A stretch of 63,900 bases of DNA, counting the filler, from Olpidium bornovanus S191 (Eukaryota > Fungi > Olpidiomycota), in the NCBI GenBank assembly GCA_017911155.1. It is 33 parts of 33 records of this genome, joined end to end, with 100 filler letters (N's around TTAATTAATTAA, not from the genome) between each part and the next. Parts side by side here need not be neighbours in the genome. Positions count along the whole stretch, not along the records: positions 1 to 1,974 come from JAEFCI010007238.1; 32 more parts are not named here. One strand, 5' to 3'. The stretch's first letter is position 1; every line of letters starts with the position of its first letter. Position numbers and translations under genes: made by a program. Positions 1 through 1,974 of the stretch are shown here, one piece after another. Below the pieces are notes generated by a model. The model was not told the origin of the DNA and did not search any database. It saw only the letters and a program-made list of their open reading frames with translations.

Positions 1-289
1 AAGTCGCCCGGCGGCTTGGACTTCGCCTTCCCCCGTCGCAGCCGCCACACAGGCCGTCTTCCCCCCCCCCCCCCCCCCGCCCCTACCCCCCCCCCCCCCC
101 CCCCCGCCATTCCGCGGTGAACTCGGCCGTTCTCACCCTCGCCGACAAAGAAGCAAGCGATGTATCAGAACTCCAATTTGATCAACGCCAGATAACAGAA
201 ACATGGCATTGCACATTGAAGCACGTTCACGTTTTGAAAAAGGATGATGGGAACGGGCTTCGAACTAAACAAAATTGGCTGCCCTCGAA

Positions 290-935
290 CCTGCGCTCCC
301 ATCTAGATTTCGTCTGCTTACGTGCCTGGTTTGCCGCCGGGATCAGAAGGAATGTATCCCCAAACGGGGAAAAGGAGGGAAAAGAAGGAATAAAAGGCGG
401 GGATTCCCTCGGACCTACGCTCCTCTAAATGAGGAGTTTTGGCTGCCTACGTACCCGGTTGCTGCCGGGATCAGAGGGAACGTTTTTCCAAACAGGGGAA
501 GAAGGGAAAAGGAAGAAAAAAAAGGAAATAATTCAAAAGCGCGCATCTCTCCTCGCACTTAGGCTCCCCAATTGGAGGAGTTTTGGCTGCCTACGTACCG
601 GGTTTTCAGGATGAGAGGATACGTAGTTCTACTACAAAGGGAAAGGAAGGAGGGAGAGGAGGGGGAGGGGCCTTGCACCTATGCTTCTTTCGGAGCTTTG
701 GCTGCCTACGTACCCGGTTGCCTGGGATCAGAGGTAACGTAGTTCTACTACAGGGGAGAAGGAGCTAAAGTAGGGAGCTATAAATTAAGGGAGTTATAAA
801 GTAAGGGAGCTAAAGTAAGGGGGCTGAAATAAGGAGGGAAAAAGTGGAGGGCGAAGGGCCTCGAGCCTACACTCCTACTGAAGGAGTTTCGGCTGCCTAC
901 GTACCCGGTTGCCCGGGATCAAAGGTAATGTACTT
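290..935 (+). repeat. Array of five imperfect copies of a two-hairpin motif separated by purine-rich variable spacers
   Basis: Core GGAGTTTYGGCTGCCTACGTACCCGG-loop-CCGGGATCAGAGG at about 433, 577, 692 and 883, plus a degenerate copy near 303-350. Each good copy is preceded by CCTA(C/T)(G/A)-like sequence and a CTCC...GGAG hairpin. Confidence 0.9.
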
Positions 936-1071
936 CTTAGCGTTGAGGGAAAAAAGAGAATATTGGGCGAGGAGTGTGAGCCTTTTATACCGGCGTGGGG
1001 GGGACTCGGTCGGGGAGCTGGGGGACGGGCGGCGGCAGGGTAAGGGGGTTTGTTTACGAGGTGTTTTTCGC

Positions 1072-1206
1072 GGGGGAGGGAGGGAGGTGTGGAAGTTATG
1101 TGTTTTGCCGTCTGTGCTTTGGCAAGGCGGACGCGTTCGCGTTTATTCAAGGAAGAAGGAAGTGACTATAGTAAACATTCAGGGGTTCCGACTATATCGT
1201 CCAACA
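1072..1206 (+). mobile_element. Polypurine tract plus short (about 119 bp) 3' LTR of an LTR retroelement
   Basis: GGGGGAGGGAGGGAGG (1072-1087) directly precedes TGTGGAAG (1088) and the segment ends TCCAACA (1206), giving TG...CA termini. A roughly 85% identical copy (by eye) starts at 26263. Confidence 0.75.
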
Positions 1207-1974
1207 GTTTCCACCAACTTTTCGTTTTTCCATCTTCCAGCTGGCCTCCTGGTGAAGCTCATCTGGTATCCTGGGACAATTACTGGGAAAGTTCTCAGTA
1301 CAGTCTCAGAATTTGCACGGCTGACGTGGCCTTCTTGCCCTTTGATATATCATATCCCAACGATGATAACTGACATTGCTGACTGGGCCGATGCCCCTTG
1401 AAGAAGCGGGTGCTCTTTGTTTTTGATGACTGATATTCTTACGCTTCTGAGTCGACTTAGCGGATGCCTTTGGTGGATTGTTGGTGGCCCGCATCAAGGC
1501 ATCATATCATCAGGCAGCTTCTTGACAGGCCGTCACATCAGCGACATTGGCCGGAAGAGCTGCAATTGCTTTTCGGACGTGGTCAGAAAGGTTATCAATG
1601 TATTGGAGAAGTGAACTTTCTTTTCCAACTCCTCCATCAATGATGGCAGTCAAAGCATTAAAATTGCAAGGTATACTCTTGGACGGATCTCGTCTGACAG
1701 AGATTCCTTAGTTTCCTGACAGATTCCAGGCTCTGGCAAAGTGAGTATTTAGGAGATGCTTCATAGACTCCCATGTAGCTTCCTTTCCATTGTCAACATT
1801 GGTAAACCAGAGTGTCTCTGCCATGCCGGATAACTTGTTCTCGGCTAGGACAACATGCAAATCAGGTTGAATTCCGGCGAAGCGAAAGTAAGTTTTCATC
1901 TTATGAATGAAAGCACGAAGCTTCACAAGAGTATATCTATATACTCTTATACGTATACCCTCCTTTGCCTTCAA
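1207..1974 (-). pseudogene. Degenerate Ty3/Gypsy gag (retrotrans_gag-like), interrupted by the LTR element on its left
   Basis: LSGMAETLWFTNVDNGKEATWESMKHLLNTHF, then frameshifted QTRSVQEYTLQF and LLQYIDNLSDHVRKAI. In-frame TGA TGA at 1512-1507 and further stops. Confidence 0.7.

Follow-up and report, generated by a model that had tools for sequence, protein, structure and literature searches.

The closest published parallels to the locus described here are the tRNA- or 5S-bearing TRIMs Helenus, Ajax (TRIMp3) and Cassandra. These non-autonomous LTR elements of fungi and plants carry a short structured block that resembles a small RNA, as does the locus studied here; the block lies within the LTRs, keeps the A and B boxes and is recognisable as tRNA or 5S, and TRIMs with such LTR segments occur in rusts and agarics (PMC10886601). 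Structured RNA motifs are also repeated in other non-autonomous retroelements, namely the retrozymes and the hammerhead-bearing Penelope-like elements, and arrays of 100-200-bp units lie between pol and the 3' LTR of the plant Tat/Ogre elements, where they are family-specific satellites with no reported conserved structured core. In stringent LINE/SINE pairs, which are non-LTR, a structured 3' tag is common to the autonomous element and its parasites; it is presumed to be read by the machinery of the element, whose reverse transcriptase binds it at the extreme 3' end. The CTE of Mason-Pfizer monkey virus and related 3' UTR export elements are located between the last coding region and the 3' LTR, the CTE being one long hairpin, broken by conserved internal loops, with two loops in 180-degree symmetry. 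In the Psi/DIS signals of retroviruses and of Ty1/Ty3, short conserved stem-loops whose unpaired bases are invariant are combined with a palindrome of 6 nt; the signals are required in cis, are kept by defective or non-autonomous genomes mobilised in trans, and lie in the 5' leader with the palindrome in a hairpin loop.

Here we describe a short structured module that forms an array in the window, by which we mean the whole 63,900-nt stretch of DNA analysed, 33 joined parts of the genome assembly of the fungus Olpidium bornovanus S191. Unlike the blocks of Cassandra, Helenus and Ajax, the module is internal to its elements, is missed by tRNA and 5S models and is also present in autonomous elements. 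It differs from the motifs of retrozymes and Penelope-like elements in having no hammerhead or other ribozyme core (Rfam, E ≤ 10), and from the Tat/Ogre units, which the array in the window resembles in layout, in having a core conserved across families and kingdoms. Like the LINE/SINE tags it is common to autonomous elements and their parasites, but it lies upstream of a polypurine tract (PPT) and an LTR. It shares with the CTE its place in the element and a helix broken by conserved internal loops, which recur in repeated copies; yet there is no sequence similarity to the CTE, and the module occurs as separate head-to-tail units in arrays and singly in autonomous elements. With the Psi/DIS signals it has in common the short stem-loops, the invariant unpaired bases and the palindrome, but it lies in the 3' UTR, and its UACGUA spans the top of helix P1 and the internal loop.

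Results

Organisation of the array-bearing piece

The piece of the window that comes from JAEFCI010007238.1 (positions 1-1974) consists of three parts, a non-coding repeat, a 119-bp unit and the interior of a gag element (Table 1). The non-coding repeat (about 61-1087) begins with 45 nt of poly-C and a unique segment of 180 nt, continues with five tandem units, each 115-191 nt long, and closes with a G-rich tail. An array of hairpin-bearing units had been predicted at 290-935; it proved to be real, with five units at about 312-936 lying where they had been placed, and a repeat search of the window agreed, giving a 55-nt family with spacings of 144, 115 and 191 nt and a 17-nt family in five copies. 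In the four units of 441-488, 585-629, 700-745 and 891-936, the stem originally designated hairpin B comes after GCCTACGTA. The spacers are purine-rich and, as had been noted, show no alignment between units. A minisatellite in one of them has the repeat TAAAGTAAGGGAGCTA and explains the longer 191-nt unit.

Table 1 Features of the array-bearing piece in window coordinates
Feature	Position	Strand	Evidence
Homopolymer tract, poly-C on + / poly-G on -	61..105	-	TRF: period 1, 45 copies
Unique region between array and homopolymer tract	110..290	-	Homology with L003, L006, L009, L014, L020, L021, L027; family A alignment
17-nt exact complement of tRNA-Ser(CGA/UGA) variable-arm/T-arm segment	283..299	+	k-mer comparison, 35 genome tRNAs
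Module unit 0, degenerate: TGCTTACGT, long hairpin, ATCAG, weak closing half	312..358	-	R1 23.3 bits, E 3e-4
Module unit 1 core (P1 + P2); hairpin A 420-436	441..488	-	R1 41.2 bits; sequence; fold
Module unit 2 core, hairpin B decayed; hairpin A 564-580	585..629	-	R1 44.7 bits; sequence
Module unit 3 core, best-preserved copy; hairpin A 684-695	700..745	-	R1 65.4 bits
14-16-nt minisatellite in purine-rich spacer, units 3/4	761..834	.	TRF period 16, 3.9 copies
Module unit 4 core; hairpin A 872-886	891..936	-	R1 45.0 bits
G-rich tail of array-bearing element	937..1087	.	Homology with other arrays stops at about 1036-1048 (L002 to 1036, L006 to 1048)
119-bp LTR (TG..CA), 3' LTR, in minus-strand sense, of a separate small gag-bearing element	1088..1206	-	At least 20 dispersed sharp-ended copies; C8709
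Degenerate Ty3-type gag frame, several stops, runs off right end of piece	1306..1974	-	Pfam

The unique region at 110-290 is also present in single-module repeat families elsewhere in the genome, and the repeat family of the array is bordered in other contigs by C or G runs like that at 61-105. Autonomous copies have a G-run and the start of an LTR about 190 nt beyond the module; by analogy, the tract at 61-105 is a candidate PPT of the array-bearing element, if the sense of that element is the minus strand. Homopolymer runs of C, G or A, 20-45 nt in length, border the repeat family in many contigs (for example L016, L017, L024 and L027), often at contig ends; they may be real PPTs, but in so fragmented an assembly they may also be artefacts of sequencing or assembly.

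The 119-bp unit belongs to a separate gag element

In the original prediction the sense of the array was set by a PPT and LTR at 1072-1206, an assignment that did not hold up. The 119-bp TG..CA unit is an independent dispersed repeat with sharp ends and at least 20 copies. In contig C8709 a second 119-bp unit, in direct orientation, lies 790 nt past the same gag piece, so that the minus strand reads LTR, leader and a gag that has the typical motif; 1088-1206 is therefore the 3' LTR of a minus-strand gag element, separate from the array element. From 1207 to the end of the piece runs the interior of this small LTR element, with a degenerate Ty3-type gag on the minus strand. Its frame matches Ty3_capsid (E 1.2e-4) and Retrotrans_gag (E 0.038) in Pfam, both below the gathering scores, and the related gag in C8709 matches Ty3_capsid with E 0.0024. 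The element as a whole (window 1088-1974; L032, which is C8709) is about 1.75 kb long, non-autonomous and on the minus strand, with 119-bp LTRs flanking a GC-rich repetitive leader of about 750 nt and a gag-only coding remnant; at least 20 of its LTRs are found in the genome, solo or paired.

The 119-bp unit is not attached to any other array of the genome, homology between the window and other arrays is confined to window positions 102-1048, and the array element simply ends with the G-rich run at 1072-1087.

The core module and its genomic settings

On the plus strand, the core of about 45 nt reads TGCCTACGTA, a variable hairpin, ATCAG, a linker of 4-9 nt and CGTAGTTC, in all five units and as the general form across copies. 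Written as RNA of the same strand, it is UGCCUACG-UA, the variable hairpin P2, AUCAG, a 4-9 nt linker and CGUAGUUC. The assembly that was searched comprises 28 Mb in 13,525 contigs and is highly fragmented and rich in homopolymer tracts. The array region matched 36 places in it. An 18-nt core with up to three mismatches occurred 94 times, versus 23 for a reversed control, and the anchor pair GCCTACGT-N9-33-GRATCAG 80 times, versus 0 in the control; a covariance model of the core, R1, found at least 132 places at E ≤ 1. These numbers are well above what chance would give.

The module is found in three settings: arrays, single copies in non-coding repeat families and autonomous elements. Arrays of 3-6 copies, with varying unit number, are present on seven contigs besides the window. 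Single modules are carried by the non-coding families A, B and others, whose flanks are otherwise unrelated between families, and many module copies are decayed. The module is thus kept in non-autonomous derivatives, both as single copies and as arrays.

Position and orientation relative to pol

In at least 25 copies of this genome, representing at least five autonomous families, the module is located 25-135 nt past the integrase stop codon, as the complement of the plus-strand motif. Integrase-bearing contigs with the module just after the ORF are L081-L084, L089 and C550, and tblastn extended this arrangement of integrase and module to about 20 other short loci and to L259, an unrelated contig from a metagenome. 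The integrase was identified by Integrase_H2C2 and rve (E about 4e-5), by SH3_Tf2-1 and by an Atlas score of 0.95 (most frequent taxon, Basidiomycota). All of the roughly 25 copies of the TCCTC-type families adjoin the pol end, which places the module inside the element and outside the LTR. About 190 nt past the module, L082 and L083 have a run of purines with a G-run at its end and then TG. The position and orientation of the module are thus constant relative to pol in the autonomous elements, and the proposed link between a repeated structured module and the 3' region of LTR retroelements was borne out in the form of a module that sits after integrase in Ty3/gypsy families.

The same contigs speak against the sense assigned to the motif, which had been the plus strand: in every autonomous element examined, the integrase-coding strand carries the complement of the plus-strand motif. 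As the module after integrase lies on the complementary strand, a coding-sense transcript would have the order GAACUACG, linker, CUGAU, hairpin, UACGUAGGCA. By analogy, the sense of the array in the window is probably the minus strand, with the order array, 180-nt segment and poly-G. The purine-rich side differs between the two settings, being the plus strand in the array spacers and the coding strand in the autonomous copies, and so the element may carry its array in inverted orientation.

L081 contains two modules in opposite orientations. In this contig (C3385), positions 1476-1603 are equivalent to L068 151-384; the two modules, which face one another just past the integrase gene, make up an inverted repeat of 87 nt with 92% complementarity.

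Two helices, one strongly covarying

The module contains two helices, P1 (CUACG/CGUAG) and P2, which is hairpin B of the original prediction. P1 closes an asymmetric internal loop of invariant bases that includes the palindrome UACGUA; the palindrome is invariant among the aligned copies and lies partly within P1. At least three flush pairs were formed by hairpin B in 69% of 75 distinct sequences, versus 8% of shuffles. In a MAFFT alignment of 75 copies, P1 and P2 pair in 92% of cells, the outermost pair of P2 being C-G in 44, U-A in 22 and U-G in 5. In alignment A2 of 93 copies, which was fitted by the R1 model and hence favours the modelled structure, 90.6% of cells pair, versus 83.0% in shuffles, a value reached by 0 of 500 shuffles; slid controls on the same alignment pair in 13-42% of cells. 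P2 shows double changes at all four pairs, and C-G, U-A and G-C types at three of the four, whereas P1 is nearly invariant and has few compensatory variants: CUACC/GGUAG (L259), CUAUG/CAUAG (L296 and L312) and GCG/CGC (L318), all of them in diverged copies, few in number, whose alignment comes from a model with P1 built in. Both helices show compensatory changes: P2, predicted to be a conserved stem, covaries strongly across copies, and P1 is supported by few such changes.

Hairpin A, the second stem predicted for every unit, had a different fate. It is present at the four places listed in Table 1 and is clear in the lineage of the window and in a plant family (see below), but among 27 family representatives the best upstream stem has a mean of 5.3 bp, versus 5.2 bp in shuffles (mean z -0.33). 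Hairpin A is accordingly not supported as a universal feature, and it is lineage-restricted. An outer helix, CCUC/GAGG, around both hairpins was also considered; it appears in the minimum-energy fold of unit 1, but on inspection other families do not retain it. The folding energies of the two strands are no more than modest (z -0.2 to -3.3).

The module could also be functionless, a passively inherited or self-propagating sequence, such as a recombination-prone palindrome or a favoured insertion target, with the array as a satellite-like expansion. The several contigs with arrays of variable unit number and the many decayed copies would fit, and the highly fragmented, homopolymer-rich assembly may distort context; yet the invariant sequence blocks are better conserved than the adjacent integrase DNA across families and kingdoms, compensatory changes preserve P1 and P2, and position and orientation after pol are constant. 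We therefore regard this explanation as improbable.

Which strand is functional

Substitutions giving G-U pairs on the plus strand had been taken to fix that strand as the functional one. Such pairs do occur in the window, but over more copies (alignment A2) 39 plus-strand cells are G-U versus 42 that are A-C, which is G-U on the other strand; the argument from G-U pairs fails on these counts, and the balance looks like transition decay of dead copies. The tetraloops disagree as well, being GNRA-like on the coding strand in the fungal CCCGG family and GUGA on the other strand in the plant family, and folding energy does not differ between strands.

An RNA of plus-strand polarity, antisense to the autonomous elements or sense to inverted non-autonomous ones and perhaps a new self-cleaving ribozyme, as the original prediction had allowed, has little probability. 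The array and family A are purine-rich on the plus strand and end in PPT-like G-rich tracts, the GUGA tetraloop of the plant family is on that strand, some variants of hairpin A pair better there, and the invariant unpaired bases of the internal loop resemble a catalytic or ligand-binding core. Against these points stand the opposite orientation of all autonomous copies, the assignment of the sense-setting PPT and LTR to another element, the lack of a G-U excess on the plus strand and the lack of a match to any ribozyme family.

Comparison with known RNA families, tRNA and 5S

An Rfam cmscan at E ≤ 10 gave no match on any module tested, covering the window, 17 loci of the same genome and two metagenome loci; in particular, hammerhead, twister, twister-sister, HDV-like, hairpin, pistol and hatchet ribozymes were not matched. 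The claim that the motif lacks the hammerhead, twister, HDV and hairpin cores thus stands for the window and about 20 other loci, and no Rfam family matches it. Full-text literature searches found no description of the motif. A MIR6027 match in L068 (57 bits, below the model threshold) is explained by the 87-nt inverted repeat of its two facing modules.

The 17-nt complement of tRNA-Ser is found only in the first (leftmost) unit of window-type arrays, including those of L003, L011 and L050. The pol-sense strand of 283-299 is the stretch identical to tRNA-Ser, and it could be a template-switch relic. Local alignment to tRNA beats 60 of 60 shuffles for this first array unit only; against 35 tRNAs of the same genome, 23 of 25 representatives align no better than shuffles, the exception being the 17-nt identity of the first array unit. 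ARAGORN found no tRNA on eight module-bearing metagenome contigs, the Rfam tRNA models gave no match on the modules tested, and an initiator-tRNA anticodon-arm pattern was not found in the assembly. A primer-binding site for tRNA-Ser was rejected, as its matches are not enriched (79 versus 107 in the control). A 5S origin was set aside as well: there was no RF00001 match on the modules, and the genome's own 5S gene was not recovered for direct comparison. The resemblance of the module to 5S is only a lead, and a remote relationship may exist.

These data bear on the proposal that the module is the relic of a small RNA gene (tRNA or 5S), with a present or past polymerase III promoter, as in Helenus, Ajax and Cassandra. 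Besides the precedent of TRIMs with tRNA- or 5S-like LTR segments (PMC10886601), it can draw on the 17-nt match in the first unit of window-type arrays and, in several lineages, on an upstream block, CGAACC, that is complementary to a T-loop. It is very unlikely nonetheless, since the tRNA similarity of other families is no better than in shuffles (35 genome tRNAs), neither ARAGORN nor Rfam finds tRNA or 5S on the modules, the B-box-like segment is not conserved, and the module is internal, outside the LTR.

Occurrence outside the Olpidium genome

A strict three-anchor pattern matched at least 120 metagenome contigs, mostly plant-like. Among the matches listed, most belong to one high-copy family in which P2 is CCC-GUGA-GGG and is accompanied by an adjacent hairpin, and about ten further lineages appear, with two or three modules per contig in L193, L259 and L265. 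The invariant blocks are identical in the metagenome lineages and in the Olpidium genome, and in this respect the module is conserved from fungi to plants. The high-copy plant-like repeat (L168-L287, mainly contigs Ga0209282 and Ga0099826) has one module per copy. In its consensus about 300 nt separate the module from a sharp boundary (TGTCGCG...), and the opposite side has a region that is A-rich and contains (CA)n; no LTR pair was found for this family, and retroelement proteins are rarely nearby. In L196, the module and a Streptophyta-type laccase are on one contig. The module contigs L215 (2409-2464) and L269 (8719-8774) also encode reading frames that, judged by their N-termini, are of mitochondrial atp8/atp1 type. 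These reading frames suggest that the two copies lie inside a plant or moss mitochondrial genome.

Discussion

The array unit is best read, in our tentative view, as a conserved structured cis-element of the Ty3/gypsy 3' UTR that has been multiplied in a non-coding derivative, most likely a packaging or dimerisation signal for Gag/nucleocapsid. Among the functions first proposed, such a signal or a protein-binding site is the most plausible class. A cis-acting replication signal is suggested by the conserved unpaired bases, the covarying helices, the fixed place after pol, and retention and multiplication of the module. We infer that the module acts as RNA rather than DNA; a role in replication or packaging is suggested by the fact that non-coding derivatives, in which only sequences required in cis survive, have retained it.

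Such a mechanism would start from autonomous elements with one module in the 3' UTR, 25-135 nt past the integrase stop and roughly 190 nt before the PPT. The module in the genomic RNA would be recognised for packaging by the element's own Gag/nucleocapsid, and dimerisation might proceed via the UACGUA palindrome or by strand exchange of P1. Non-autonomous copies, needing to be packaged in trans, would keep and multiply the module, and the arrays may be a parasite's means of competing for packaging. Several observations count against this cis-element reading: the balanced pair counts, the conflicting tetraloops, the unremarkable folding energies, the opposite modules of L081, the plus-strand purine richness of the array spacers and the near-invariance of P1. 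The known packaging and dimerisation signals of retroviruses and Ty1 are in the 5' region and not in the 3' region, which likewise counts against packaging.

It is unlikely that the module is a 3' UTR signal read by the host, either a 3'-end processing enhancer favouring the poly(A) site of the 3' LTR or a CTE-like export or stability element. The module does occur only upstream of the 3' LTR and never within an LTR, primary-sequence blocks that are invariant from fungi to plants would suit a conserved host factor, and AT-rich, AATAAA-like sequence adjoins the module in several fungal families; UACGUA also fits the UAYRUA pattern of the yeast efficiency element. The AT-rich flank, however, is upstream of the module in the coding sense and not downstream, packaging matters more to a non-coding parasite than export or translation does, and five copies of a processing enhancer would bring no obvious gain.

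A role as single-stranded DNA, in which a fold of the minus-strand cDNA just past the PPT aids plus-strand priming, strand transfer or RNase H positioning, is distinctly doubtful. The fixed orientation in autonomous copies does put the plus-strand motif on the minus-strand cDNA, the distance to the junction of G-run and LTR is of a constant class (about 170-200 nt), and the helices, which are short and GC-rich, would form in DNA too, with balanced G-T and A-C counts. LTR elements offer no precedent that we know of for a structure of this kind, however; the spacer of family A is longer and different, and arrays would put most copies far from the PPT.

To our knowledge, the cis-acting signals of LTR retrotransposons have been defined experimentally for few models only (Ty1, Ty3 and Tf1), and conservation beyond close relatives has not been shown so far. 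It is possible, though less than probable, that the module is an ancient structured RNA common to fungal and plant Ty3/gypsy elements, required in cis as a packaging or dimerisation handle and multiplied by non-coding parasites. If so, it would be the first family of cis-acting RNAs in LTR retrotransposons to be defined across kingdoms. Should the module instead prove to be a site for a host factor or a structure in DNA, that too would be new for Ty3/gypsy elements. If functional, the module would offer a handle on genome recognition in Ty3/gypsy elements, a marker for their non-autonomous relatives and a candidate new Rfam family.
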